From: Macrostomum lignano
Taxonomy: Eukaryota
Reading direction: 5' to 3'
Assembly (NCBI GenBank): GCA_002269645.1
Contig: NIVC01001861.1
Coordinates: forward strand, 164,840-228,839
Length of the DNA: 64,000 nt
Shown here: one piece after another, positions 1 to 60,600 of the stretch
Numbering within the stretch: position 1 is the stretch's first letter
Layout of the letters: every line of letters begins with the position of its first letter
Position numbers and translations under genes: made by a program
The notes under the pieces: model-generated
Databases searched by the model: none
Seen by the model: the letters and a program-made list of their open reading frames with translations, nothing else
What the model was told of the DNA's origin: nothing

Positions 1-40
1 AGAGAAGCAAGCAGCAAATTCCTCAACCAGAGCTACTCAC

Positions 41-3630
<3,590 letters not shown>

Positions 3631-6829: not shown

Positions 6830-9800
6830 ATGGACACGCCGCTTCGCTCGGTGATTGTCATCACTGAGAAATTCCGCGCTATCTCCTCGGTTGAGCACGC
6901 TGTACTCAACAATACGCAGATTGTTGTGGCGCCGCACGACCGCGGCCTTCAGGGCCTCACAAATGCGATTTCAGCTGCGCTGAAAGGCCGCAAAGCTAAC
7001 AATATCGCTTTCATATTCAACAGTACATTGAACTCGGTGCAGATCTGCCTCGAGGAGGACCAGCGGCTCTGCCTGTTCAACTTGGAGAGCGTGAAAACTT
7101 GTTTCGAGTTGCGCAACTTTTTCCTATACGTTTCGTCGGCCTTTCTCACCCAGGAGCTCGGCAGCAAGAGGGTGGACTTTCTGGCCTGCAGCAATGCGGG
7201 CACCCAGGAGGCTCAGGTGAGAGGATAAACAGCTGACAGGTTGAAATCGTCTTTCTCGAATCGAACTTTCATATGCTCTAAACTTACAACGCGTGTGAGA
7301 GATTCAATTTAGACTACTGAGAAAAGTAGAAAAATAAAGATTTAAATCGTAAAATCTCTCACACAGCCCGAAAAATGTCGACATAAAATTTCGTCTATGG
7401 CATGCTTAGCTTAGGTTAGCTTAGTAACTCCATCTATCATCCGGCTCACCACTCCGACTCCCCATCCGCTTTCTCATTAGGCGCTGCTGCAGGAGCTCCG
7501 CTCCCTCCTGGGCTCCGATATTGAGGTGTCACTGTCGCGCGAGCTCTGGGGCCTGGACGTAATCATTCAGCGTAACATTGACGAACGCGGTCGCAACTAC
7601 CGAGTTGGCGACGTCTATTACAAGCCGGACAAGCTGCGCACCCTCACAGCCAGCAGCGGGCAGAGTTTGGCCGGCTTCGAAAAAATTCGCATAGTCGGCA
7701 AAGGAGCCTACGGCACGGCGGTGCTTTATAGGAAAAAGGACGACGATTCGCTGGTTATTCTAAAGGAGATCAATATGCATGACTTAACGGCGCAGGAGAG
7801 ACTGCTCTGTCTTAACGAGATCAAGGTAAGCTAAGCTATGCTGTATTGTACATTTCCTGGTGAGGAATGGGTGTGCTGGCGCTTTGCCTGGAACTGCTGT
7901 ACATTGGTGAGGAATGGGCGTGTTGGCGCTTTGCCTAGAACTGCTGTACATTGGTGAGGAATGGGTGTGTTGGCGCTTTGCCTGGAACTGCTGTACATTG
8001 GTGAGGAATGGGCGTGTTGGCGCTTTGCCTGGAACTAGTGTACATTGGTGAGGAATGGGTGTGTTGGCGCTTTGCCTGGAACTGCTGTAAATTGGTGAGG
8101 AATGGGTGTGTTGGCGCTTTGCCTAGAACTGCTGTACATTGGTGAGGAATGGGTGTGTTGGCGCTTTGCCTGGAACTGCTGTACATTGGTGAGGAATGGG
8201 TGTGTTGGCGTTTTGCCTAGAACTACTGTACATTGGTGAGGAATGGGTGTGCTGGCGCTTTGCCTGGAACTGCTGTACATTGGTGAGGAATGGGTGTGCT
8301 GGCGCTTTGCCTGGAACTAGTGTACATTGGTGAGGAATGGGTATGTTGGCGCTTTGCCTGGAACTGCTGTACATTGGTGAGGAATGGGTATGTTGGCGCT
8401 TTGCCTGGAACTGCTGTACATTGGTGAGGAATGGGTGTGTTGGCGCTTTGCCTAGAACTACTGTACATTGGTGAGGAATGGGGTGTTCGTGCTTTGCCTG
8501 GAACTACTAATGTAGGGGGTTGGCACTTGGTCTGGACCTGCTGTAGATTCGTGTTTATTGTCTTGGAATGGAAATCGAAGCTGGCAATCGCCCAATGCCG
8601 TCCATTATTTAAGCTCACAGCACTGCTGGCACAATAAGCATTTTTAACCGCCTCCTCAGGTGCTGTCAATGCTGGACCACCCGAACATCATCGGCTATTT
8701 TGACAGCTTCGAAGAGGACGGCGTGCTGCTGATCGAGATGGAATATGCGGACGGCGGCACCCTCGCCCAGTACCTGTCCGACTGTCGCGAGCCGCTAAGC
8801 GAAAAGGACGCTCTGTACTATTTTCAGCAGATTGTTTCCGCGATTCACCATTTTCACTCTCACAAGATTCTGCATCGTGACCTCAAGACGGCTAATATTT
8901 TTCTTACTAAAGACAATATTGTTAAGGTGGGTGCCTGTGGCCTTTTATTAATTATTAGATATCATTTTCTGGCAAGATCAATCTAGATCCTCAGTTGCTG
9001 GACCAGCCTCCCAGAGTGTCAGTTGCTGGGCCAGCCTCCCAGATCCTCAGTTGCTGGGCCAGCCTCCCAGATCCTCAGTTGCTGGGCCAGCCTCCCAGAT
9101 CCTCAGTTGCTGGGCCAGCCTCCCAGATCCTCAGTTGCTGGGCCAGCCTCCCAGTGCCTCAGTTGCTGGGCCAGCCTCCCAGAGTGTCAGTTGCTAGGCC
9201 AGCCTCCCAGATCCTCAGTTGCTAGGCCAGCCTCCCAGATCCTCAGTTGCTGGGCCAGCCTCCCAGATCCTTAGTTGCTGGGCCAGCCTCCAAGATCCTC
9301 AGTTGCTGGACCACCCCTCCTCCCAGCTCCCACCCGACCCAAGCAGCCAGCCAGCCAGATTAAAACTGCTTAAACAGCACCAAACAGAACTGAACGGCAC
9401 TGAACAGGTGGGCGACTTCGGCATCGCCAAGATGATGTCAACTAGCAGGCACGCGGCATCCACCGTGCTCGGCACTCCCTACTATCTGTCGCCGGAGATG
9501 TGCGAAGGCAAAGAGTACAACGAGAAAAGCGACATCTGGGCGCTCGGCTGCGTGCTGTACGAAATCGCCTGCCAGCAGAAGACATTCGAAGGCTCGAATC
9601 TGCCAGCTCTGGTCAACAAGATCATGAAAGGCCAGTTCGCGCCAGTCAAAGGCAACTACAGCCAGGAGTTCAAGGAGCTGGTGGCCAAGATGCTGCTCAA
9701 TAAAGAGCCTGAGAAGCGGCCTACAGCGGCGGACTTGCTGTACAAGCTGCTGCCGCCGCTGATTCGAAGGGTTAATGAGGCGGATTCGTCCACTGACGCT

Positions 9801-12800
9801 GACGAAGACGGCACCGCCTCGGCTCGTGGCGGCGGCGGAGGCGGCGGCAGCGGCGGTCAGATGGGATCCGGGAGTGGTAGGGAGACTCTTGAATCAAATT
9901 GCATTGGAATCTTCTAATAGAGATTCCCATTAAATCCCGTCATCCCTTGAGAGTCCCCTGCTTCCCATAGAGAAGCCCTGATTCCCATAGGGAATCCCCC
10001 TGATTCCCATAGAGAATCCCCTGATTCCCATAGAGAATCCCCTGATTCCCATAGGGAATCCCCCTGATTCCCATAGAGAATCCCCTGATTCCCATAGGGA
10101 ATCCCCCTGATTCCCATAGAGAATCCCCTGATTCCCATAGAGAATCCCCTGATTCCCATAGAGCATCCCCTGATTTCCATAGGGCATCCCCTGATTTCCA
10201 TAGGGCATCCCCTGATTCGCATAGAGAATCCCCTGATTCCAATAGAGAATCCCCCTGATTCCCATAGAGAATCTCCCTGATTCCCATAGACAATCCCCTG
10301 ATTCCCATAGAGAATCCCCTGATTACCATAGAGAATCCCCTGATTCCCATAAAGAATCCCCTGATTCCCATAGAGAATCCCCTGATTCCCATAGGGCATC
10401 CCCTGATTCGCATAGAGAATCCCCTGATTCCCATAGAGAATCCCCCTGATTCCCATAGAGAATCCCCTGATTTCCATAGGGCATCCCCTGATTCGCATAG
10501 AGAATCCCCTGATTCCCATAGAGAATCCCCTGATTCCCATAGAGAATCCCCTGATTTCCATAGGGCATCCCCTGATTCGCATAGAGAATCCCCTGATTCC
10601 CATAGAGAATCCCCCTGATTCCCATAGAGAATCCCCTGATTTCCATAGGGCATCCCCTGATTCGCATAGAGAATCCCCTGATTCCCATAGAGAATCCCCC
10701 TGATTCCCATAGAGAATCTCCTTGATTACCATAGAAGAATCCCCTGATTCCCATAGAGAATCCCCCTGATTCCCATAGGGCATCCCCTGATTCGCATAGA
10801 GAATCCCCTGATTCCCATAGAGAATCCCCCTGATTCCCATAGAGAATCTCCTTGATTACCATAGAAGAATCCCCCTGATTCCCATAGAGAATCTCCTTGA
10901 TTCCCATAGAGAATCCCCCTGATTCCCATAGAGAATCTCCCTTATTAGCATAGAGAATCCCCTGATTACTACGGAGAACTCCTGAATCCCACATCAAAGA
11001 ATCAAACGCGATCCCCACATCCCGCACACTCATCCCAGGCTCCCGGCCGGACAAGCGCTCAGTCCTGTACGCCATGAACCTGGCCAACCCTACAATCCTA
11101 CAATCCTAGGTTGACGCCCTACAATCTGCCGTCAAAGCTGCGCATCCGTTCCGTCTGCTGCAGCGACACCCACGCCATCGCAGTGGGCTCGGAGCGCTCC
11201 GTTTACTCCTGGGGCGAGAACGCCAGCGGCCAGTTGGGCCACGAGGACCTCATCGCCCGGAGCAAGCCGACCCTGGTTGACGCTCTACGCGGCAAAGGCA
11301 TCAGCCGGGCAACCTGCGGCTTGGCGTTCAGCGTGTTCACCTCGGACAATGGCATAGTTATGACCTGCGGAAGCGGCAGCCACGGCTGTCTTGGCCACGG
11401 CGACTGGGTCTCCGTGGCCCGGCCGAAGCTCATCGAATCTCTGCTGTCTGTCGATGTGGCCGCCATCGCCTGCGGACCGCAGCACGTCGTCGCCGCTAGC
11501 AAGGAGGGTCGCGTCTTCGCCTGGGGCCGCGGGCCGACGGGCGGACTGGCCTGCGTGACGAAACTGACCGGTGCGCGCCGACACCGGTGCCGATTCAGGT
11601 AACTGGCAAACAGCCGGACGGACACTAGGAAGCTAAGATTCTCGGACAGTATGGCACCAGTAGGTCACTAAAATACTCGGACAGAATGACACTAGGTCAC
11701 TAAGATACTCGGACAGTATGGCATTAGGTCACTAGGACACTAGAATACTCGGACAGCATGATACTAGGTCAGTAAGATAGTTTCTGACGCTGAACTTTGC
11801 ACCAATCCTGCAACAGGAGCCTCAGCGGATTCGCGCAGTGTACGCCGGCACTGACGGCAGCATGTTTCTGACAGACGCAGGGTCTGTCCTGGCCACAGGC
11901 AACAATCGGCACAATCGACTGGGCTTGAATCAACGCCAGGGCTTTCTAATGACAATGAAGAACATGTTTAACAAATTGGACGTCGATGGTGTCAAAGAAC
12001 CGACGCCTTTGCGCGCTTTAGCTCGGTACAAAGTGATTTACATCAGCATGGGACCCGAGCACACGGCTGTGCTAGTTGAGCCAAATCACGTTGTAACATT
12101 TGGGCGCAATAGCGAAGGTAATGCGCGAATAGTTTAGAAAGTAAAAAAACAGAGCTCCTCTAACAAATAACCCTTTTTAGCTCGAAAGAGAGCTTTGTTT
12201 GTAGGCAATAAAACTTCTTACCCATTGCGGTGCAGCTTCGGTTGTGGGCAATAAAACTCATCACCAATTGCGGCGCAGCATCGGTTGTGGGCAATAAAAC
12301 TCCTTACCCACTGCAGCGCAGTTTCGGTTGTGGGCAATAAAACTCCTCACCAATTGCGGCGCAGTTTCGGTTGTGGGCAATAAAACTCCTTACCCATTGC
12401 GGCACAGCTTCGGTTGTGGGCAATAAAACTCCTTACCCATTGCGGCGCAGCTTCGGTTGTGGGCAATAAATCTTAAACATTGCAGCACAATTTTGGTTGT
12501 GGGCATAAAACTTCTTAAACATTCATTACAAAGAGGAGCTGTTCAAGAAATCCGAATTTCGAATAGATTGAAGAATAAATGTTGACTCTATGAGCGTATC
12601 ATCTCCATTTCTAGGCCAGCTGGGCCTTGGAATCACCAAAGCCCAAGGCGGCATCGTCGAGGTGCAGGGTCTCGACGGTAAGGCAGTAACCGGCATTGTC
12701 TGCGGGCCGCGGTTCACCCTCTGCCAGGTGGCCGACAGCGAACTACTCCTGTGGGGCCTTCGAGTCCCACTGCCCGACCAGCATCCGTCGCAGCAGCATC

Positions 12801-13837
12801 GGCAGAGGCGTCGCTCTTTTGAAAGCGTCGACTCAGATGACTCGGACGATTCCGGCGATGGCGCCGGCGGCGGCGGTGGCGGTGGCGATGGTGGCGGTGG
12901 CGGCGGCGGTAGTCGTGCAAACGGGCGCCGCGGCGCCCATCCGGAACTGCACCTGACCCCGGTGCCGATCCTGATGCTCAACAACAACCAGAAGCCCAGC
13001 CCATCGTCAGCCACAGCGACGGCCGTGGAGCAGGTGAGCCTCGGCGCGGTGCTCACCCAGCGGGACAGTCTGATGGTTCAGGTGGAGACCACCGCACCGG
13101 CGCCCAGCCACCGCCGGCACCAGCACCAGCCTCAGCGGCGGGAGCGCAGCATCTCGTCATCTTCATCAAGCGCCGCGGCTAAACGGCTGCCCTCGGCTCA
13201 GGCGCCGCCGTCGGCGCAATCGTCGTCGTTGAGTCGGCGCCAACTGAACGGCAGCGGCGGAGCTGCGGGCGACTCTTCGGACTCGGCGCCGGAACTGGAG
13301 CCGCTGCCGACCTGGGTGAAGCGCGAGTTCGAGGCCGCGCCGCACCTGCCGGCTCCTCCGGCCTCCCAGTCCAGCAAGACAATGACGTCCGTTTCGTTGA
13401 CTCGCCAGACGTCAACGTCATCGGTGGCCTCGGCCGCTGTGCCGACAATGTCATCGTCGGCGTCTTCGGCGGCCCCGCTGCTGGAGGAGCTGCACGTGCT
13501 GCGCCAGGAGAAGCTGCTGGCAGAGAAGAAGCTGTCGGCCCTGGAGTCGGCCAGCCGGACGGAGGCGGAGGAGGCGCGAAATCGCGAAGCGATGCTCAGA
13601 CGGGAGCTGGACTCGCTGCGCCGGGAGCTGGCAAAACAGCAGGGCCTGCTGACGGAGAATCAGCAGGCGGTCAGCAGCCTGCAGCGCCAGTTCGGCTCCA
13701 AGCCTCAGCCGCAGCCGCAGCCGCAGCCGCAGTCAAGACTGCACTCTGCGTCTCTCTCGGCTTCTTCTTCCTCGTCATTCGCCACGGCCGCCTCGTCGTC
13801 CGAGCCAAGAAAGTCGCGAGTTTGTTCAGTCCAATAA
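6830..13837 (+). CDS. NEK9: NIMA-related Ser/Thr kinase, NEK8/NEK9 (niki-like): DUF4347-like N-terminus, kinase, RCC1 repeats, coiled coil, CaaX. Exons 6830-7216, 7481-7825, 8660-8926, 9408-~9877, 11039-11598, 11817-12117, 12615-13837; exon 5 has two frame lesions (11089-11104 and ~11533)
   Basis: Kinase motifs GKGAYG, LKEI, NEIKVL, HRDLKTANIFL, VGDFG, GTPYYLSPE, KSDIWALG; RCC1 motifs VYSWGENASGQLGH, GSGSHGCLGHGD, GRNSEGQLGLG. GT-AG junctions are phase-consistent once the exon-5 lesions are corrected; the exon-4 donor is one of three phase-1 candidates. NEK8 versus NEK9 orthology is not resolvable by eye. Confidence 0.9.
7850..8505. repeat. 47-bp minisatellite, about 14 copies, NEK intron 2
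   Basis: Unit TGGTGAGGAATGGGTGTGTTGGCGCTTTGCCTGGAACTGCTGTACAT. Confidence 0.95.
8985..9312. repeat. 28-bp minisatellite, about 11 copies, NEK intron 3
   Basis: Unit CAGTTGCTGGGCCAGCCTCCCAGATCCT. Confidence 0.95.
9915..10975. repeat. 21-22-bp minisatellite, NEK intron 4
   Basis: Unit CCCCTGATTCCCATAGAGAAT with variants (TTTCCATAGGGCAT, TTCGCATAG). Confidence 0.95.
11630..11772. repeat. Short degenerate tandem repeat, NEK intron 5
   Basis: CTCGGACAG(T/A/C)ATG...TAGGTCACTAA recurs four times. Confidence 0.7.
12200..12520. repeat. 43-bp minisatellite carrying AATAAA in each unit, NEK intron 6
   Basis: Unit CAGCTTCGGTTGTGGGCAATAAAACTCCTTACCCATTGCGGCG; seven perfect AATAAA between about 12206 and 12470. 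Confidence 0.93.
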
Positions 13838-18932: not shown

Positions 18933-19652
18933 ATGGGATGCGCATCCTCAAACCCCAGCAACGATGGTGCCCGGCAGCGGTACTCGCCAAAAGCCGATCA
19001 GAAAGCCAACCGAGGCGTCGGGCTCGCGCAGGACGGCCACTTCAACAAGGACTCGCCGCCAGCGGACGAGCAGAACGGCGCCGCCAACCAGCTGCAGGAG
19101 AAGCGGCTAATCTACTGCAAAGTGAAAGACGAAGAACGCGAATGGGACGACAGGTGCATACTAACACAGCAGGAGATCTTCAAACTGTGGACGTCGTGGA
19201 ATTTCGTGCACGATCGGGTGTACCGAGCCGGGGTGCACATGTTCCTGCTGCTGTTCAAGCAGCACCCAGTCCTGCTGGCCATCTTTAAACGCTTCGGCGG
19301 AGTCGAGAGCGGAGAGGGCGGCCTGGACGGCTTGCTGACCAAGGACAACCCGGATCTGAAACGGCACGCGGCCACGGTGATGGGGCTGCTAGACGATGCC
19401 ATAGTGAATCTGGACAAGTACGAGCTGGTCAAGGCTCGCCTTCACTGCACCGCTCGAACGCATCGCCAGTTTGTCGGCTTCGAGGCGCGTTTCTTCTGGC
19501 TGATGCGCGAGCCGTTCCTCGGCTCCCTGGAGGCCATCCTGGCCGAGAAGTACACGGACGCGATGAAGCAAATCTACGAGAAGACCATCGATTGGATTCT
19601 GGGCGAGTTGTACAACGGGTTCCAGGAAGCGCCGCGAATGTCGAACGGCTAG
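18933..19652 (+). CDS. Intronless globin with N-terminal acylation motif (globin X-like / membrane-anchored globin), 239 aa
   Basis: Single ORF. MGC N-terminus; globin pattern: A-helix W (LWTSW), B-helix GVHMFLLLF, C/CD PVLLAIFKRF (CD1 Phe), distal E7 His (LKRHAATVM), proximal F8 His (ARTHRQF), G-helix FWLMREPF, H-helix YEKTIDWI. Confidence 0.92.
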   Translation: MGCASSNPSNDGARQRYSPKADQKANRGVGLAQDGHFNKDSPPADEQNGAANQLQEKRLIYCKVKDEEREWDDRCILTQQEIFKLWTSWNFVHDRVYRAGVHMFLLLFKQHPVLLAIFKRFGGVESGEGGLDGLLTKDNPDLKRHAATVMGLLDDAIVNLDKYELVKARLHCTARTHRQFVGFEARFFWLMREPFLGSLEAILAEKYTDAMKQIYEKTIDWILGELYNGFQEAPRMSNG

Positions 19653-29931: not shown

Positions 29932-32900
29932 TCAATTATCCGGCTTCGAAGATTTCATCGAATCCACGTAGCCCCTGGACATTCGCGCTCGAAACGCTGT
30001 GAATGGATCGGCGGCAGCGGAGCCTCCCCGCCGGTTGCCGCCGCCAGTTGCCGAGCCAGTTGATGAACACTCCGCGCCAAGGCCCAGTCGATCTTCTGAG
30101 GACGCCGCCGGCCTGTCGAAAGCGGCGCCGCCTGCTCGTCGGGGCGCGAATCCGCCGCGCGGCCCAACAACCAGAGCGCCGATAGCGCGCGGCATCCGAC
30201 TGCTCGACGAAGCCGAAGCCGATGGACGATTGACGCGGCCGGCTGACGTGAACGAAGGCGGACTGGGCGACCGCGAGCCGGCAGCAGCAACTCCACCTTC
30301 GCCGCCGCCTGCGCCGCCTCGACTATTGGAGGCCGAACGGCTGCGGCTGCGACTAGGGCTTCGGCTTCGGCTTCGGCTGTCGCTGCGGCTGCGACTCCGG
30401 CTGCGGCTTCGACTTCTGCTGCGACTGCGACTGCGGCTCCGGCTGCGACTCCGGCTGCGGCTTCTGCTGTCTCCGCTGTCACTGTGTATGCTGCGGGCTC
30501 GACGCGACAAGAAGCCGAGAGTGGCGCCCGGGCCGGCCCGGCTAGGCGGACTCGACGGGTTGCCGCCGCTGCCGCTGCCGCCACCGCCGCCGCCGCCGCT
30601 TCCTCCGCCGTTGCCGTCGCCGCGATGCCGCCTCTCTTTGGCTCGCTCCTCTAGCCAGTCGTCGCGCTCAAACACGCGGCCCTCCGCTGTCTCGCCGTCG
30701 GCTTTAGTAGCGGCCAGCAGCGATTTCCTAGCCCGATCCTTGGCCTTGTAGAATTCGAATAAACCGAGCCGCTCCCAGCCTTCGGAGTCGCGCGGACTGT
30801 CGTGCGACGGCGGCGCCGAATAGGAGTCTAGTGCGGCCCGGATGAACTCGCTGATGGGATGGCGAGCGGGCAGCATGAGCTGGTCGGGATCCAGCTCTGT
30901 ATAGGCGGTGGCGTGCAGCGGTATTAGCGGCACCATTAAACTGGCCGGCTGTTGGTAATAAGGCGCCTGAGGCTTCTCCGGCTTGGATATGAGAGCGGCC
31001 GGCGGCGGCAGCAGCGGCTGCGGTGGCGGCGGTGGCTGGCCGGGCGCGAACCCAGGCGGAGGCCTGGAGAGGTCCGGCAGAGGCAGCAGGCCGCCGGGTT
31101 TATTTGGACCGAAATTGCTATTGGAAGCTGTTGAATTCAAAGACTGCGTAGCAGTGGAGGAAGAGGCGGCGGGCACCGACAAAGGGACAGACGCAGCGCT
31201 CTCGGAGGACCTGGCGGCGGCAGCGGCGGCGGCGGCAGCGGCCTGCCCGATGATCTGCTGCACCCTGGTCCGCTGCTGCTCGATCTGGTCGCGCAGATGC
31301 TTCTCAAACTCCGTGTGCTGCCGTTGCAACTCCTCGCACTTGGCTTGACATTGGATTCGAATCTGGGACGCCTCCTGCGCCAAGTCCGACTCGGCAAGGC
31401 GGTCCTGACGCCACTTGGCGTAGGCGGCCTCGCAGTCGGAAGACAGGGCCTGAGTCACCGCCTCGGGAAAGTAGGCGTTCTGCACCCACAGTGAGCGAAC
31501 CTTCTCCAGCTTCTGGGCACGTTCGGGGTCGCTTGCTACTAGCTTGTGCGCCTGGCTGAACATTGGGACTATCACCGCCTGCGGTGGGTGATGGGGAACG
31601 ATAGATTTTTAGTTTATTGATTGCATGAGTATTTATTAACATTCATGTCAAATTTTTGGACAATTCACTTTTTAAAAAAACTAGAAATCCGACAGTTGAC
31701 GTTTCCAATAACACCGAAAAATTTACGTTCTTAATAACACCGGAATATTTACGTTCTAAATAACACCGGAAATTTTCCATTTTTAATACCGAAATATTTA
31801 CATTCTTTACACCTGAAAATTTGCAGAGGTAACTACACCAAATTTGAAATTTTGTATTCCGAATGACTAAAGAAAATTTAGATTAGCTATAAACCCGGAA
31901 AATTTATATTTCAAACAAACAACTACAGCGTTCACATTTAAAGAATAAATCCGGAAAATTAATGTTACGAATAAAATACGGATCATTGCATAAACCTTCA
32001 TATTTTGTAAATCCTGAATCTATTTACCTTTTTAAAGGGCCCTAGGCCTTCTGTATTGTCCTTAACATTCTTCCGTCATTTTATAATTATCTCAAGAGAC
32101 CGGAGTCTATTTGAAAATCTGTTAACAAAGGAATGTACAAATAGACAATTCTCGAAATGAAACGGGAATATAAGATGAGGAATATTTGAAGATCTGACTA
32201 ATAGCTTAACAGGATTCCCACTGCCATTGGCCCGTGCTCTTGCCAGTTCTGAATTAAGAAAGAAATAGAGTGCAGCTTTCTTCAAGCGCATTTGTTGCAC
32301 ACACGGAAATTCTAGACAGTAAGCCTGTGCAGAGTATCGATTTTTTTATTTTAACACCTCAACACAAAAGAAAAATTCAAGACGCTTCGCTTCCTTAGAG
32401 ACCAGAGAGGACTGTTGAAGGGCCAAAATTTCTTTGATCTAATTTAATTAGCTCACAATTTTTCCTGATTTATTTCTGCCTTCTGTGTTCTCATTGCAAT
32501 TTTTCTAATTGACGCTACCATCTCTTGTTTAACCTCTCAGTCCTTCTGCTGTTCCTCTTCCAGTCTTCTTCTGCTGTTCCCTTCCAGCAGTCTTATTCTG
32601 CTGTTCTCCTTCCAGTCTTATTCTGCTGTTCTCCTTCCAGTCTTATTCTGCTGTTCTCCTTCCAGTCTTCTCTGCTTCCCCATCCAGTCTTCTCTGCTGC
32701 TCCCTTCCAGTCTTCTCTGCTGCTCCCTTCCAGTCTTCTGCTGTTCCCCATCCAGTCTTCTTCTGCTGTTCCCTTCCAGTCTTCTCTGCTGCTCCCTTCC
32801 AGTCTTCTCTGCTTCCCCATCCAGTCTTCTTCTGCTGTTCCCATCCAGTCTTCTCTGCTGCTCCCTTCCAGTCTTCTCTGCTTCCCCATCCAGTCTTCTC

Positions 32901-35855
32901 TGCTGCTCCCTTCCAGTCTTCTCTGCTTCCCCATCCAGTCTTCTTCTGCTGTTCCCATCCAGTCTTCTCTGCAGCTCCCTTCCAGTCTTCTCTGCTGTTC
33001 CCATCCAGTCTTCTCTGCTGCTCCCTTCCAGTCTTCTCTGCTGCTCCCTTCCAGTCTTCTCTGCTGTTCCCTTCCAGTCTTCTCTGCTTCCCCATCCAGT
33101 CTTCTCTGCTGCTCCCTTCCAGTCTTCTCTGCTTCCCCATCCAGTCTTCTCTGCTGCTCCCTTCCAGTCTTCTCTGCTGCTCCCTTCCAGTCTTCTCTGC
33201 TGTTCCCTTCCAGTCTTCTCTGCTTCCCCATCCAGTCTTCTCTGCTGCTCCCTTCCAGTCTTCTCTGCTGCTCCCTTCCAGTCTTCTCTGCTGTTCCCTT
33301 CCAGTCTTCTCTGCTTCCCCATCCAGTCTTCTCTGCTGCTCCCTTCCAGTCTTCTCTGCTGCTCCCATCCAGTCTTCTCTGCTGCTCCCTTCCAGTCTTC
33401 TCTGCTGTTCCCTTCCAGTCTTCTCTGCTTCCCCATCCAGTCTTCTCTGCTGCTCCCTTCCAGTCTTCTCTGCTTCCCCATCCAGTCTTCTCTGCTGTTC
33501 CCTTCCAGTCTTCTCTGCTGCTCCCTTCCAGTCTTCTCTGCTGTTCCCCATCCAGTCTTCTCTGCTGTTCCCTTCCAGTCTTCTCTGCTGCTCCCTTCCA
33601 GTCTCCTGTTGTTCCGTTTTTTCTCTTCATCATTTCACTCTCTTTTTCGAATAATAATAACTATTTCGCACGCAATGTTTTTATCTTGCTGATCATTTTT
33701 ATGACTTCAGTTATTGCTTTAAAATTCCGACATAAGCAGAGCTTTTAAATAGCAAAAAGCAAATTTAAAAAAAGTTATGCGTTGCATTCGTTTCTTAACG
33801 AACCGGGAAAAGAGAACTGAGAAACCCTTGCAAAAACATTATGATTGCCCCTGTGTCAGCAGAAAATGTAAAGAAGGGAGCAATGAAGCATTAAAAAGTT
33901 GTACAACCTTCTTGTGCACCGTTGCTTTTAGCTTTTTTAGGTCGCACTAGCATGCTAAGGAAATGCCTTTCTTGCCTGTGTTTGTCTCCACTTGTCGCGC
34001 AGGAATCACGCAAAATAAATCATGTGAACCCCTCTTTTTCACTTCATCTCTTCGCTGTAGCAAGCAGGCTAGAGAAATAAAATATAAAGAAACACAGTGA
34101 TCCGATTACTGTTGCGCTAGCATCAGACACTGAAATCTATTGACAGGCTTTAGGGAGGCGAGTCATTCTGCCTTCAACACACACGCACAGCTGTTGTTAA
34201 TCCCCCTACAGTTGTTTGGTTCGGCTCACCTCAAGCTTTCGGGCCTCAGCTTGAGCATTCAGCTTCCCTACCTGCATTCAGCCTCCCCATCTGCATTCAG
34301 CCTCCCCATCTGCATTCAGCTTCCCCATCTGCATTTAGCCCCCACTCAATCTTCATTTCTTATTCAATATTCATCTCCCACTCAATCCTTGTCAATCATA
34401 ATCTCTTACTCAATCATAATTTTCTACTCGATCATAATTTCCTACTCAATCGTCATCTCCTACTCAGTACTCAATCATCATTTCCTATTCAGTCATCATT
34501 TCCTACTCAGTCATCATTTCCTACTCAATCATCATTTCCTACTCAGTCATCATTTCCTACTCAGTCATCATTTCCTACTCAATCATCATCTCCTACTCAA
34601 CCATGATTTCCTACTCAATCGTCATCTCCTACTCAACCATGATTTCCTACTCAATCGTCATCTCCTACTCAGTCATATTCTACTCAATTTTCATCTCCTA
34701 CTCAAATCATCAACTCCTACTCGATCATCAACTCCTACTCGGTCATCTCCTACTTAATTATCAACTCCTACTCAATCTTCATCTCCTATTCAATCATCAT
34801 CTCCTACTCAATCATCATCTCCTACTCAATAATTATCTCCTACTCAATCATCAAATCCTACTCAATCATCTCCTACTCAAGGCACATGAACTGTAACAAA
34901 CATAACAGTTATACAAATCATCCTATATATTAAAAATATATACTAAAAATGAAAATTATACATAACAAACCTGCAAAGCGCCAATCAGAGATTCCGCATT
35001 GCGTCGCCTACAATGATGCAACAGATCATTAACCAGGTAGATCAGATGCAGCCTAGGCGCGAATTCTTGTCCCAAAGCGATTGAACGAGCTAATAGAAAA
35101 TTAGCAAATACTTCGGTGGCGGCTGAATTCTGTGCACGGTCTAGCATCCAATTCTTAGCGGCGCTGATGTTCTCTTTAGTGCAAGCGTCAACTACAGGCT
35201 GAACTGCGGCGTCAATCTCTTCTAATGACATGCTCATCACGGTGCACAGAGAATGCAATTGTTCCAGTCGGCGACGGTTAATTAACTCGTCAGATTGCTG
35301 CTCCTGCGAGGCGATTGCTGCTTCGAATTGGGCGGTTAAATTTGTCTCGCTCTGGCTTAGCCTCTGTTCAGCATTTACTAACATCTGTTGCAGAGTCTGC
35401 TGCTCAGCCTGAGACTGTTGCTGCAGCATAGCAGCCGCAGCGGCCGCCTGTTGCTGCTGCTGTTGAAAAGATGCAATCGGCGGACCGGATGGCGGCAGTG
35501 CCGGCGGCGGCAAACTGAATGGCGGCGGCGGCGGCGGCGGCTGAGTCGTCATCTGCATCGGCATTGACGTCATCGGCGGCTGCTGCGGCGGCTGCTGCAA
35601 CGGCGGACCGGGCATCAGTGGCCGGATTCCCCCACTACTGGCAGTGGACGATGCTGGCGGAGAGAATCTGTGTATGGCGCCTATGGCACCTATGGGCGGC
35701 CTGGGCGATTCTAAAATGCTCCCGCCGCCGCCGCCAGAGGAGTCCCAACGACTGCCACCACCAGAGCTGGACTGAGATCGGCTGCCCCAGCGACTGCCGC
35801 TCCCACTACCGCTGCCGCCATTATCCCATTGGCTATTTGATCCCCTGGAGTGCAT
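29932..35855 (-). CDS. CHERP: Calcium homeostasis ER protein CHERP/SCAF6-like splicing factor (CID domain, RS region); exons 35855-34971 and 31578-29932
   Basis: CID: QPVVDACTKENISAAKNWM...RLHLIYLVNDLLHHCRRR...ALQ|AVIVPMF...EKVRSLWVQNAYF. CHERP-specific block PYYQQPASLMVPL...PPSHDSPRDSEGWERLGLFEFYKAK, RS repeat, C-terminal DPF..FR motif. Junction CAG|GTTTGT to CCGCAG|GCG is phase 0. Confidence 0.92.
32530..33605. repeat. 21-23-bp pyrimidine-rich minisatellite in CHERP intron
   Basis: Unit TTCCAGTCTTCTCTGCTGCTCCC and variant ATCCAGTCTTCTCTGCTTCCCC. Confidence 0.95.
34270..34880. repeat. Degenerate 18-bp minisatellite in CHERP intron
   Basis: CCTACTCA(A/G)TCATCAT(T/C)T at period 18 (34502, 34520, 34538, 34556). 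Confidence 0.9.
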
Positions 35856-45411: not shown

Positions 45412-46145
45412 CTACCTGCCCAGCGTGTTCATAACCTCCGGCGTCTGCAGGATGCGCAGCAGGTCCGGCTGCAGCAGACAGCCGTCAACGAACTCCTCGT
45501 GGGAGATCTCGCAGTTCTTATCGGTGTCGAGTCGTCGAAAGAACTCCTCACAGACCTCGTCGGGTGTTTTGGTGAGTTGCACTCCACGGTCCCGCGCAGT
45601 CTGGAACACCGCGTGCATGATAGCCAGCACCTCCTCCCGAGAAATGCTCCGATCTTTATTACTGTCGAATAGTTCGAAGAATTGTTGCGCTTTTTTGCGC
45701 ACGGTCTCCAACGAGCTGTGCCGCTGGGCGACCATGTTGAGAAAGTCGGAGGTTCGACCAGTCGGCTGGGCGGCCTTGAACTCGGCGTAGAGCTGGCGAA
45801 TCTCCTGACCGCTGAGACGGCTGGCCTCAACTAAAAATGCCACCGACTGAGCGTCCAGTTCGAGCGGAGCAGCCATTTCTTCGGTCTCTTCTAGTAGCAG
45901 TAATGAGGAAATTTTTGAGGAAACTTTTAGGGAGCTTTTGAGAGTCTATAATCCCGGCTGTGCCATTGCCAACCAGTGCTGAAGGCTGTTCAGGGGTTAA
46001 ACACTCGCTGATCTCTCCTTCGCTAATTTAGGTAACGGTCTGTTCCCCTTTTTCACTTGTTACGCCCCTTAACCCCCCTCGCGCCCACCTCCTCCACCTT
46101 CCTCTCCCTGGCAATCTTCAGTCCAGCCGAGCCGCTGCTGCCCAT
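45412..46145 (-). CDS. Neuronal calcium sensor (NCS/neurocalcin)-like EF-hand protein with internal deletion; main exon 45890-45412, probable first exon 46145-46064 (MGSSGS...)
   Basis: NCS-type N-lobe start (RLSGQEIRQLYAEFKAAQPTG), EF3 loop DSNKDRSISREE, TPDEV.EEFFRRL, EF4 loop DTDKNCEISHEE, FVDGCLLQPDLLRILQ. Upstream ATG GGC AGC AGC GGC TCG gives a myristoylation consensus; donor C|GTAACA (46063) and acceptor CTACTAG (45891) are both phase 1. The first exon is less certain than the main exon. Confidence 0.8.
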
Positions 46146-54676: not shown

Positions 54677-57600
54677 GCTCGCCGTCAGCCTCAGCAGTCA
54701 GCTGCAGAAGCGGTGCCAGCCGCCAACGATACCAGTGCAAGTGAGCAGGAAGATTCTTCAACTGAATCCCAGGACAGAGCTTCGCTGCCTACACTGGCTT
54801 GCACTGGTACGTCAAATTGCCTGCTTAACTTGAGCGAGCTCTAATTTCCTCTTACAAATATATATATTTGTTTATCTGTGCCAGTTTGGCCTTAACTAGC
54901 TAATTTGAATTCTTCCAAGCGTAGAAATTGGTTCGAAGTCGTTCGAGTCTTCAACAGGACTTTCGATTCAACTGGTCCCCGTTGCACTGCTGGCCTGTTC
55001 ATTGGTGCTTAGCTTTAGCCGCTGCACTATTTATGGGGTAAAATGAGACGCAGCAAGTAGCCAAGACTTTTCTCTGACTGTTAAGTCACCCGGATTCCTT
55101 CAGGCCTAAAGCTCAGTTTCTAGCCAAATTTGACCTAAAATGGAATGTGGAAGTGACGAAAATTCTGGACAGCCTTTTTCCTTTTTAGCTAAATTTATTT
55201 TTCTTACCACCAAAATTTTTAGCTTGGGCATTTTCGCAGTATGCACCAATAATTATTCATAATGGCCATAAAAGTTATTTGTATACCTCTTGGGGCTTGC
55301 CGGTTGACATAGTTTAGGATTTGCCGAATAAAACGCCAGCTCTGAAACGAAGTAATGAGCCTTTAAATTTAAATGAATAACCGTAACTGCCGACTTGTAA
55401 TAGTATATTAGAGACAATTTACCAGCTTTTATTCCGATCGATTGGAATTCATTTCAGACCAGCAGCAACAAGTCGAACCTGCGATGGCCGCGCCGTCAAC
55501 CTGCAGCAACGGTGGCGACGTCATGGACGACCAGAAACGCTATTTGACCTTCAGCGACATAGCCAGTGGCATCGACCCGGAGGCCACGCCAAATCAAGCT
55601 AAATCGGTTGTACGCTCGGAGACCATCGAACTCGAGTCCAGCCTAGATTTGGACAGATATCCGGGCTTAAGCGGCGTCGGGTCAGGCAGTAAAAGTGGCA
55701 TGCTACTCAAGGACGCCATCATGCGTTGTAGGCGCGAATCCGGAGCTAAAGTTCTCCGTCAGGAGGAAATTTCCTCCCTAGGTATCGTCCGCCGACGCGT
55801 TGAGCACACCTATCGGTCGAGCTTCCAACTACCGGACGCGTCAATTGTAGCTGTGACTCATCGCGAGGTGTATCACAGCACCGATCCGGAAGTGGAGGTA
55901 ATCGTTACTCTGGCACAAGCTGCTCCATCTGGTGGGCTCAAAACCAAGATCGGCGATGACATTAGTGTGTCTGAGTTAGCTAGAGAAAACCGTTGGGCCA
56001 GCTTGATGCTCTCTAGCGATGGTTACTATGACGACCAGCTGTGCATGATGCTGCTCGGTTGTCACCGGTCGGGCCCAGCGCACCAAGAGGAGACAGTTGT
56101 AGAGCCGAATTCATCAGCCGCCGCTGAGGCTCAAGCCGACCCAAATGTTGTTGACACAACTCTTGCCTCGGAGATTAGCCTGCCGCATCCATTCGAGTAC
56201 CAATCGATGTACGATGGAGACAAAGCCAGAAACGTTGATGAAGACGGCGAAGTGGTTGATCCGGTCGATAGAGAAGCATTGGTGAGGCGAATCCTAGCTG
56301 ACATTGATGCTTCGTACCGCTGCGGCTCCTGTGATTCTATTCGGCCAGACAATCGCCCAAGCGCAGTTGAAATCGGCGAGTTTTCTGTTGGCAGAGTTGG
56401 CGACCGAGCCCGGGTCATGTCAGCCTCAATGGATCACCTGGCTGTCACCGAGACTCGATCTCGACGCCGGATGCTCGCTTCGTCAGAGCGGTCCCATGTG
56501 GCTGAGTCAGACTCAAATTTGGCGGCAAAGGTGGCGGCCGAAAAAACTTCCGCAAACACTTGCCAGTTGTCTAACGCTTCGAGCTCCAGTCTTGGCTACG
56601 ATTCCCACTCTTCTGTTTACAGCTCAGTAAGCCGGGTCTCCCGGAAACTTTCCATGTCTGATCGCGTCTATCTTGAGGTTCTCAGCGACGAGAGCCAATT
56701 AGTTAGCGACGCTGAAGAGAATGGCGACGATGAGGAATCGATTAATCGATGCCAGACGCAAGAGTTCTCACTGCCTCCGACGTCTACATTCTCTGCTATG
56801 GTTGATGAGCCTCATCATCAGAATCGAGAAAAGATTCAAGAGCAGCAGAACAACTCACAGCAGCAACAGCAGAAGCAGCTTCAGCGCTTATCTCGGGCGG
56901 AGGTGCTCAGCATGGACAGTTTCGAAACGGCTAGTGAAAAAACCACTGAACATACCAAGGACACCGTGGACACGAGTGTAGACCAAGCGTTTACAGCGTC
57001 AGTATATGCTCGCCGACCATCCTTGTCACTTCCCGACTCTGGCGAACTTGCTCCTGCTGCTGCGCCAGCTATTGAACAAGTTGATGGTCCCGCTAACAAG
57101 GACTATGGCGCTATAGTCCGCCAGCGAGCCAAGAAATTTGAGAGTGCTGCACCGAGGTACGGTTCGAGGACAGCTGAAGAGCGTCGCTCATATCAGGAAC
57201 TGCAGGACACCGGCGCGGTGGCGCAGACAGCCCAGGTTCACGAGGCGTACATCAAGCAGCATGAGATGCAGCCGGCTCCTGGGCAGTTTTGCCTTGATGT
57301 TGAATCTGATTCTCAGGAAAGATTTGTTTACCAACGAAACCAAGATTTGGAGAGTAAAGAAATAGTTGACGAGATTACTCACAGTAGTAGAAGTGATCTA
57401 TCAGCCATCGAACATGAGGCTATGATGATTAAAAGCAGCCTGAAATCGGCTCAAACATATCGCAGCCGTCCAAACATAATACCATCTACCCTTGCTGGTC
57501 CGACTGCCGCTAACGAAAGTGCAGCGTCTGTCAGCAAAGGTGAACACCGAGCACAGGACGATTTGACACAGATTCTATCCGCTAACATTGGCGATAGCTT

Positions 57601-60600
57601 TGCAGCAAAGGAATTGTCTTCTGTCGAAAATGCATCTTCCGTTAAGAGAGAGCAGCTTGAACCTAGCATGACTCCAAAGACGCCTGAGCCTAGTAAACAG
57701 GAGAATTTGGCGCCATTAGCATTAGAGGATACTGAAATTAGTGAAGAAAAAAGTTCCGCGGCTAAAGGCAGCACTCAAGCAACTAATATTCATCACATGA
57801 TACCCACAAAGAAACCTATTTTATCGTCTCCTGTAAATAAAAAGTCCGCCTCTACAACTTCAGTTGCCGACCATCGGGGCCAAGAAGATCTGATTCAAAT
57901 TCAACACACGTCAGGTACTGCCAGTGGGATTGAAATTTCAATCGTAGAAAACTCAGAAGCGACAGAAGAGACTCAGTTTAGTCCCAGCTTGTCTGAATCT
58001 GTGCTTGTTTGTCCAGCCGCTCCCAACGAAAGCATTTCTTTATCAGCAGCAACTGCAAGTCAGGAGCTAAGGGGTCAAGAAGACCTTACTTTGCATATTC
58101 CGTCAACCGTCTGCGTAGAAAATGAGATGGATAAAATTAGAAAATCAGATGAGCTAAAACTGCTCAGCCCCAGCTTGCCAACATCTGTTCGGGTTCGACC
58201 AACGGACCCAAAGTTCAAGGGCCAGGAAAATTTTATTGCGGGTACTCAGGTTTTAAATGCCACAATAAAGGATGAAAACGAAGCTGACGAAGGCCAGTTT
58301 GGTTGCAGCTCAACATTTCCGGTTAAAGCTGTATCAAAAATTGGCTCTACATCTACATTCGCAGTCACTAAGCACCGGGGACAAGAGGATCGGATGCTTC
58401 GGATACCAGCGGCTGAAATTAGTGCTGAAGCATGCGAAGAGTCGGGCGGCAATGACAAGCAGTTTAACCCTCCTGACTTGCTATCATCGATCCGCACAAA
58501 CACTGCCGAGCAGCCTAATGCCATTAGTTCAAGTTCGTCCTCTCAGACAGACAGCGATTCCGAAACGGATGAAGAGGCGAGCGCCTACGGTGAAATTCCA
58601 CGGCAGGTAGCGCTCGGTCAGTCACTAATTTCGACGCCTCTCACTACGATTTCCGAGGAGCTGCCGTTGTCAAATCAGCCCAAAACTCTACAGCCTTCGG
58701 AGTCTATTGCTATTGTTGGACGTCATTCTGATTTGTCAAAAGAGCCAACAGTTCTTATTAAGCCGTCTGCTCCGCTAGTCAGGCTAGAAGACATGGAGCT
58801 GGCCTGCTCAAGTGTTGGCTCGCAGTCAGACGCCGGCTCCGGTACCGAATACGTGGAAGATGAAAGTTTTTCGAAGGCATCTAGTGCCACTTTTCAATTG
58901 GGACGCGGTTCAAGCGTTAGTACCCCCGAAAAAAGTCAAAGCAGCAATTTAACGAAGACAAGTGACGCTGATACAGCTCCTGCGAGCAAGTCATTAGGGA
59001 AAGAAACTCAGAAAAAACCATCTAACAAGTCTCGTAGCTTTAGTGGTAGAAATCGAATCAAGAAAACTACACCTAGCAACAAGCCGGAGGAAGCTAGGGC
59101 TGCTGAGCATTTACAGAAGTCTGTTACTTCACAACCAGTATCGAAAGAGCAAAAGCCCAGGGCATCCGCTGACGACTCGCTGCAATGCTTGGAAGAGAGC
59201 TTTTCAATGACGCTTTCTGCAACACTTCAAGCAGGCCGCTTTGTAACCAGTCATTCCACTAGCAACAAGACAGTTGCTGCGGGCACTGAGCAGAAATCGG
59301 TTCCAGTCCCTAAATCAAGCCAATTAAATTCAGCTGCTGCAGCCACTAAGACATTTGATGATAGCTTTCAACAAACACAAAAAGAGGAGCCCAAATTTTG
59401 CGGTTCGCCATCATCTACCGGCAAGTCTCGAAGCTTTAGTAACAGAATTCGCGTTAAGAAAAGCACACCTGGCAACAATTCAGATGTTAAGAGCACTGAA
59501 CAGGTGCAAAAGTTAGTTTCGGTGCCCGGATCTAATGAGTTAAAAGCAAGCGCCACACCCTCCATTGAGGAGTCTTGCAATTCAACAAAATCTCAGGGAG
59601 ACCAGAATCTAGCCGCTGAGAGGCCGAGCAAAAAGGCGATCAAGTCCTCCTTTAGATCTAAGAAGACAACAGGCTCAGTATCACCGACATCGCCACTAGT
59701 TGAAGATGATGGTAAGAAAGCTGATCAGCAAAAGCCCGAACATCAAATGAACTCTATTGTACCGATCGAAGACAACATTGAAGCATTAAGTTTTTCGCAA
59801 TTCGCCAGTCTTATGCTTCAATCGCACAGTGATATCGCGATCGAAAGCAGCAATAGCTTGCAGCTGCAGTGTCAGCAGCCGTCTCTGCATAGATCTCCCT
59901 GCAACAGCGCCTGTGCTATGAATGACAGTCTAAAACAGCCGGAGTTAATAGCGTTTGCTACGTCCACCTCGGCACTTAAGCAGAACATCAGGAACAGTCA
60001 TGTTGGATCAGTCAACTGCACAGCAGATATTGCTTCCGTTGAGGCGCTATCTTTTGCACCAAAAAGACCACTGCGGCTTTGTAGTCACATGGAGCCAAGT
60101 GTGCTACCAATTGCTACCCCATCGCCAGCAGCTGCCGCAGCTACCAGTCCCACGCCCCAGCCTCGACGCTCTAAATTCAGCCGGCGAAGGCAGTCACAAA
60201 AGAAGCTTAGCAAAACATCATCGCCGTCGTCGTCGCCGTCTGTTGAACGCTCGTCGACTTTACCAACGCCATCTCCATCCTCACCGAAGTCACCATCGTC
60301 AACGCTGTCTTCGTCATGGCCGGTAACACAGGATGACTCGAAACCCGAAAGTAATCAGCAACAGACGCCAGTCTATTCGCGCCAGGAGACGGGCGAATTT
60401 TATTTGCGAACTTCCGACGGCGAAGAGAATACAGGCGTCGAAGACGACACTAGGTCTTCAGCCGTTGGCGCAGCCGTCACGCCTCTGTCATCACTCACTC
60501 CTGCTAGTTCGCCAACGCCGTCGCCTTCGCTTCCGTCGCCGACGGCTTCGCTGGCATTGTCAACAATCCTCTGTCGGCTTCGTCAGATGGTGAGCTAAAA

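Follow-up and report, generated by a model that had tools for sequence, protein, structure and literature searches.

A NIMA-type kinase gene of Macrostomum lignano begins with a divergent DUF4347-like domain found across a metazoan RCC1-NEK clade

Gene structure of the NEK locus

We analyzed a 64,000-nucleotide stretch of Macrostomum lignano genomic DNA (here, the window) that carries on its plus strand, at 6830-13837, a seven-exon gene for a NIMA-type (NEK) kinase. The gene starts with a domain of about 190 residues of the DUF4347 type, an observation that had been made in an initial annotation of the sequence and that is confirmed here. The exon map, obtained by sequence reading and tblastn mapping of orthologs, comprises the following features.

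6830..7216, plus strand: exon 1, with the ATG at 6830; residues 1-129 of the DUF4347-like domain; donor CAG/gtgaga
7019..7021, plus strand: codon N64 (aac), in the His column of the family alignment (His in 31/43 non-redundant members)
7175..7177, plus strand: codon D116 (gac), within the RxDFLAC motif the sole residue without variation in either family alignment
7187..7189, plus strand: codon C120 (tgc), in the Cys column of the family alignment (Cys in 13/43 only)
7217..7480, plus strand: intron 1, gt..ag, phase 0
7481..7675, plus strand: exon 2 as far as the kinase, residues 130-194; last third of the DUF4347-like domain and a short conserved linker (..SGQSLAG); acceptor ttag/GCG
7676..7825, plus strand: remainder of exon 2, where the kinase domain begins (FEKIRIVGKGAYG...)
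8660..8926, plus strand: exon 3, kinase, including HRDLKTAN
9408..9876, plus strand: exon 4, kinase from DFG to the C-lobe, followed by an acidic/Gly-rich linker
11039..11598, plus strand: exon 5, RCC1 repeats, with two frame breaks in this assembly
11817..12117, plus strand: exon 6, RCC1 repeats
12615..13837, plus strand: exon 7, last RCC1 blade, low-complexity region, C-terminal coiled-coil segment and stop codon

The claim that some 190 residues precede the kinase across exons 1 and 2 is borne out by this gene model. The junction of exons 1 and 2 is in phase 0, with canonical gt..ag sites, and the spliced product holds exactly the strings reported initially, GRKANNIAFIF and, on the two sides of a dividing mark, RVDFLACSNAGTQEAQ and ALLQELRSLLGSDIEVSLSRELWG. 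The spliced N terminus is 100% identical to M. lignano UniProt and GenBank entries; exon 1 is identical to the N terminus of A0A1I8JEK6 (P0001), PAA63245.1 (P0002), and A0A1I8HKU3 (P0177), and the exon 1/2 junction is common to four independent public M. lignano models, namely, these three and A0A1I8H9B5. Residues 1-194 precede the kinase, which begins with F195 (nucleotide 7676) within exon 2, and therefore no splice is needed to connect the end of the N-terminal domain with the kinase.

It is scarcely conceivable that the arrangement is a gene-model artefact in which exon 1 derives from another transcript and the kinase starts from an internal Met. Our model is sequence based, and the public model A0A1I8H9B5 (P0176) is clearly chimeric with an upstream gene, but a single unbroken exon holds both the last third of the domain and the start of the kinase, the DUF4347 match (residues 8-146) runs over the exon 1/2 junction, and the same order is found in more than 40 orthologs from many phyla.

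The rest of the protein is a NIMA-type kinase with RCC1 repeats, as had been annotated. In the conceptual full-length protein, Pfam matches comprise Pkinase at residues 195-444 (E=1.4e-61), RCC1 repeats in five stretches (E=7.9e-45), and the RCC1-like domain (E=1e-58). The catalytic motifs are intact (the β3 Lys, K224; HRDLKTAN; and DFG), and the heptad-rich C-terminal segment that follows the RCC1 propeller is a coiled coil; within the exon 7 product, residues 916-1183 of the conceptual translation are 100% identical to the C terminus of A0A1I8H9B5. With both a NEK-type kinase and a C-terminal RCC1 propeller, the protein belongs to the RCC1-bearing NEK (NEK8/9) group, and its closest named relatives are "Nek8-like," NEKL-1, and niki.

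Both frame breaks in exon 5 leave the N-terminal domain unaffected. The first (11107-11110) is an in-frame TAG at 11107-11109 beside a tandem 8-mer (cctacaat, twice), and the GenBank model (512 residues) ends there. At the second, a G run (11531-11533) is one G short compared with the UniProt models P0176 and P0177, which read ..AWGRGADGRTGL.. at this site. The breaks may represent long-read assembly errors or the decay of one of several near-identical copies. A 43-nucleotide mini-intron (11067-11109), which bridges the first break in model P0176, was not accepted as the sole interpretation, since it is the sequence past that donor that encodes the conserved Tyr of RSVLY.

Every intron of the gene from intron 2 on is largely filled by its own minisatellite (7858-8505, 47 bp x13.8; 8985-9313, 28 bp x11.8; 9949-10967, 21 bp x47.7; 11621-11779, 32/72 bp; and 12191-12517, 43 bp x7.7), and these arrays yield long spurious open reading frames (ORFs) on both strands.

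Homology of the N-terminal domain to DUF4347

The suggestion that the N terminus is DUF4347-like holds at the level of homology, as detected through ortholog profiles, but the M. lignano sequence itself lies below the Pfam threshold. Against Pfam DUF4347 (PF14252; gathering cut-off, 24.6 bits), residues 8-146 align with profile positions 1-124 of 164 and score 15.3 bits (E=0.017). A word-indexed homolog search with the 197-residue N terminus gave no match except the protein itself, and most matches of its profile version were unnamed exon fragments. In an exhaustive HMMER search against 1.84 billion representative proteins, the 194 residues matched the N termini of full-length NEK+RCC1 proteins in other phyla, at E=4.5e-10 to 4e-4, a similarity beyond chance. 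P0003 (7,819 residues, 17 stretches), the second-best match in that search, was discarded as a repeat-driven false positive because the ortholog profile does not match it.

The orthologs provide the connection to DUF4347. PF14252 is matched by 9 of 12 ortholog domains (best E=1.1e-13), and those of the sponge Dysidea (P0070; 36.9 bits) and of Saccoglossus (P0079; 36.0 bits) are above the gathering score. The ortholog profile in turn matches residues 289-458 of ECT2L, its DUF4347 region (PDB 11xu), at E=3e-12, as well as two tandem domains of a Fundidesulfovibrio protein (P0014) at E=4.8e-24 and 1e-12. The homology of the N-terminal module to DUF4347 is solid on this transitive, profile-based evidence, and the M. 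lignano domain is, judged from these scores, a divergent DUF4347 homolog and not a Pfam-threshold member of the family.

The bacterial DUF4347 domains form the N termini of very large proteins (e.g., Fundidesulfovibrio GAB6038496.1 and a protein of a Chlamydiae metagenome-assembled genome) and align with the module over its full length, some 170 residues between β1 and the LYF..KL..W helix. When nine domains from bacteria or metagenomes were aligned in this way, SIAF, DF[FW], RxD, G, and YF were shared. The bacterial copies differ in carrying a GGDWxLE motif, which the animal copies do not have, in retaining the His and Cys (see below) more often, and in being attached to repeat-rich proteins and not to kinases.

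Predicted fold and conserved residues

An AlphaFold2 model of the N-terminal domain, based on a 12-sequence alignment, is confident (predicted local distance difference test [pLDDT], 86.7; predicted template modeling score [pTM], 0.85) and consists of five β-α units, two small hairpins, and a terminal helix, arranged as a flavodoxin-like α/β sandwich. It had been proposed that the domain is related to caspases and other clan CD peptidases, which was to be checked with AlphaFold and Foldseek. Such a relationship was not detectable. Foldseek against the PDB gave no match below E=1e-3; the top matches, which are not significant, were flavodoxin (E=6e-3; template modeling score [TM], 0.33 to 0.37) and other Rossmann-like proteins, and the paracaspase MALT1 ranked 41st (E=0.11; TM, 0.28). 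Likewise, clan CD families were absent from Pfam and PDB sequence searches, lenient thresholds included.

The only significant structural match in a viral library was a Hint-domain protein of Cafeteria roenbergensis virus (CroV; E3T4R2; E=1.7e-5; TMq, 0.50). Going by the predicted structure, this may represent a DUF4347-like domain in a giant virus.

In the caspase reading, the catalytic His was replaced by Asn and the Cys of FLACS was retained. The former is correct, with N64 in the His column of the family alignment. The latter is true of M. lignano (C120) but is no family feature. Among 43 non-redundant animal members, the two residues occur together in 11, His occurs alone in 20, and both are missing from 10; the two with Cys alone include M. 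lignano. Per column, this amounts to His in 31/43 and Cys in 13/43, with Cys missing from every listed arthropod and nematode domain and from ECT2L. The His/Cys dyad of clan CD peptidases is thus not conserved in the family, and the residues that are invariant or nearly so are D116, F97, Y175, A60, and L118. With both the His and the Cys column variable, and Asn in the former in M. lignano, we infer that the domain is no conserved enzyme in the NEK family.

Scans for bacterial DUF4347 loci yielded one genome locus and six metagenome loci. The nine bacterial copies compared have His in 6/9 and Cys in 7/9, a small sample biased toward relatives of the query that gives no fair estimate of dyad conservation. 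At two metagenome loci (L005 and L006), the His has changed to Gly together with a change of Cys to Ser, and the other seven copies keep the Cys, six of them along with the His. This joint loss hints that the two positions may be functionally coupled in bacteria.

Taken at face value, part of this pattern fits a cysteine peptidase of the clan CD type that is active, or has stayed so in some species, and serves to process the kinase or a substrate; in M. lignano it would be dead. Clan CD peptidases (caspase, CHAT, and gingipain) are α/β sandwiches with the His after one central strand and the Cys after the next one, and the motif positions here are comparable: in our model, N64 follows strand β3 (56-62) and C120 follows the adjacent β4 (113-118). 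Such positions would suit a caspase-like dyad, but they would suit any doubly wound sheet of the flavodoxin type just as well. The partial retention of both residues in bacteria, their joint loss, and the 11 animal copies that keep both would also agree with peptidase activity. Given the absence of significant sequence or structure similarity to clan CD proteins, the lack of the Cys from arthropods, nematodes, and ECT2L, and the fact that the invariant positions are not the dyad, we regard an active peptidase as very unlikely. The "dead caspase" reading is not supported by any of the tests run, and descent of the domain from a clan CD peptidase is a conjecture.

A domain that senses a small molecule, metal, or nucleotide through a pocket at the C-terminal ends of β3 to β5, as in flavodoxin-like folds, has somewhat more in its favor. 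The best structural neighbors are flavodoxin-like or Rossmann-like ligand binders (FldH, probability 0.94; a UPF0261 protein with a bound ligand), and conserved residues lie in or just after β3 and β4 (A60, H64, and D116) and after β5 (143-147; G153). These structural matches are all weak, though (TM, 0.33 to 0.41; E of at least 6e-3), and Pfam recognizes no cofactor-binding motif, so that we consider this proposal distinctly unlikely as well.

Distribution of the architecture and relation to other NEKs

NEKs are usually described as having an N-terminal kinase domain (PMC2031824). The fusion seen here is not particular to this gene; it is conserved across a metazoan NEK clade and already present in the automatic annotation of several entries. 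A kinase+RCC1 search with the starfish ortholog returned more than 1,000 relatives, and the best 120 of these were scanned with the N-terminal domain profile. The domain precedes the kinase (and RCC1 in full-length models) in the sponge Dysidea, the hemichordate Saccoglossus, the echinoderms Strongylocentrotus and Patiria, the molluscs Physella and Saccostrea, the brachiopod Lingula, the nemertean Lineus, and several nematodes. Among arthropods, this order occurs in the centipede Strigamia, many crustaceans, a termite, a cockroach, a locust, aphids, and planthoppers. The M. lignano gene is therefore an ordinary member of a conserved architecture. Precomputed Pfam annotation lists PF14252 on four such NEK entries, so the layout is visible in databases; we found no paper discussing it.

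Dipteran Niki proteins, including that of Drosophila, gave no profile match and have the kinase motif at residues 70-114; Drosophila Niki has lost the N-terminal domain. C. elegans NEKL-1 has 170 residues before its kinase, and residues 1-172 match the N termini of Ancylostoma (5e-35) and Haemonchus (1e-34) proteins, which themselves match the domain profile at about 1e-13. NEKL-1 therefore carries a diverged copy of the domain, a case that rests on these nematode intermediates, as a direct hhalign comparison of NEKL-1 with the domain profile is weak (probability, 16%). In the literature, NEKL-1 is called a Nek9 homolog or "possibly Nek8" and "uncharacterized," with no mention of an N-terminal domain.

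In a neighbor-joining tree (605 columns, 100 bootstraps) in which NEK9 is represented by one NEK9-like sequence, from Ptychodera (P0164), and by no mammalian or other vertebrate NEK9, a split with 100% bootstrap support separates the clade of the M. lignano protein from the NEK8-like proteins of Trichoplax and Nematostella and the Ptychodera protein, which groups with the NEK8-like sequences. NEKL-1, Niki, and the invertebrate "Nek8-like" proteins fall in the former clade and share the layout of kinase, RCC1, and C-terminal coiled coil; NEKL-1 and most non-dipteran members also share the N-terminal domain, the nematode copies being very divergent. The elephant-shark model A0A4W3K3S4, which starts inside the last helix of the domain and so lacks most of the N terminus, falls in the clade too. 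In contrast, vertebrate NEK9 (Nercc1) and NEK8 have the NEK kinase and RCC1 propeller in common with the clade, and NEK9 also the C-terminal coiled coil, but they have no N-terminal globular domain. Likewise, the kinase motif of the NEK9-like Ptychodera and NEK8-like Trichoplax and Nematostella proteins lies at residues 11-40, with no DUF4347 match.

These sequence comparisons show the architecture to be ancestral for a metazoan RCC1-NEK clade that includes NEKL-1 and Niki and is distinct from the NEK8-like and NEK9-like proteins. Because of the tree split and the direct kinase start of NEK8-like and NEK9-like proteins, they also suggest that the clade may constitute a third RCC1-NEK paralog. 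The domain provides a diagnostic marker that distinguishes the clade from true NEK8 and NEK9, and statements of orthology such as "NEKL-1 = NEK9" therefore need checking.

Possible function of the N-terminal domain

The gene encodes a NEK of four parts: the DUF4347-type α/β domain (about 190 residues) at the N terminus, the kinase domain, a β-propeller of RCC1 repeats, and, C-terminally, a coiled coil. The explanation that we favor, and hold to be probable with some reserve, is that the first of these is a non-catalytic protein-binding or regulatory module. From its position directly ahead of kinase strand β1, it would either bring the kinase to some partner or structure or gate kinase activation, by analogy with the non-catalytic domains that govern NEK8 and NEK9.

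A related but different proposal is that the domain is not a targeting module but an intramolecular autoinhibitor: packed against the N-lobe or the active site of the kinase, it would come off only upon a signal. A precedent for such control is NEK9, in which the non-catalytic RCC1 domain is autoinhibitory. Some 8 residues lie between the end of the domain and kinase strand β1, and lophotrochozoans and deuterostomes show strong conservation of the junction (..LYFxxxKLxxW..QQSLAGFEKIRTVGKGAYG). Against this, the linkers of arthropod orthologs are about 20 residues longer, and an AlphaFold2 prediction of the domain together with the kinase (pTM, 0.60) has a linker of low confidence (residues 185-188; pLDDT below 50) and no confident interface between the two. 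The two-domain run speaks no more for a fixed autoinhibitory interface than against one. Autoinhibition seems to us rather doubtful but clearly better placed than ligand sensing.

The relative of the domain in ECT2L offers another lead. ECT2L combines F-box, DUF4347, and DH domains; its DUF4347 domain is homologous to that of the NEKs but internal, has neither the His (..FSDG..) nor the Cys in the alignment, and is part of a putative Rho-GEF and not of a kinase. A 2026 preprint places an ECT2L dimer on the B-tubules of the ciliary transition zone by fitting predicted domains only. By analogy, that placement is suggestive of a link to cilia. Cilia are also the territory of NEK8. For the NEK domain, a link to microtubules or cilia, which comes only from the domain shared with ECT2L, is possible but speculative. 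Extending this line of thought, one may tentatively picture an ancient third RCC1-NEK paralog, present from sponges to cartilaginous fish, absent from mammals, and conflated with NEK8 and NEK9, in which the domain shared with ECT2L serves specifically to dock onto microtubule structures of cilia or centrioles or onto their partners; we think this combined scenario more likely wrong than right by a good measure. If it were true, NEKL-1 and the epidermal cilia of flatworms would be tractable entries to DUF4347 function.

Several points weigh against our preferred explanation, a non-catalytic module in a distinct NEK clade. Its function is wholly inferred. We found no experiment on any DUF4347 domain in the literature; the four papers that mention the domain treat it as uncharacterized, and none deals with NEKs. 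The two-domain model predicts no fixed docking of the domain on the kinase. The transition-zone placement of ECT2L is a preprint assignment from fitted domains in which the DUF4347 part is not specifically implicated. The split of the clade comes from neighbor joining only, with a single NEK9-like sequence and no mammalian sequences. Retention of the His in about 70% of the family, together with the joint bacterial loss, is compatible with an ancestral site for catalysis or ligand binding. Finally, the breaks in exon 5 mean that the full-length protein of this copy may not be made.

What emerges is a conserved globular domain that precedes the kinase in much of the animal kingdom, the genetically tractable NEKL-1 included, and a correction of the pseudo-caspase idea. 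The domain ties a kinase to ECT2L and to a large bacterial family of unknown function.

Other features of the window

Upstream of the NEK gene, 27-359 (plus strand) has 85% identity to part of the N-terminal 394 residues of A0A1I8H9B5, which appears to be a chimera of upstream sequence and the NEK gene; the Rho-type GTPase look of the first residues of that model was not found in the window. The remaining features are as follows.

18933-19652, plus strand: single-exon globin ORF (Pfam Globin, 1e-13) with an N-terminal MGC motif and an extension of about 100 residues, which suggests a membrane-anchored, acylated globin
29932-31575, minus strand: large ORF with DUF7819 (4e-31) and an RS-rich tail
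34956-35855, minus strand: large ORF with a CID domain (6e-11), which together with the preceding ORF may represent exons of one gene resembling an SR-related CTD-associated factor
45412-45876, minus strand: ORF with an EF-hand pair (EF-hand_7, 1.3e-15)
55442-60598, plus strand: uninterrupted ORF of 1,718 codons, rich in Ser, Thr, and Gln

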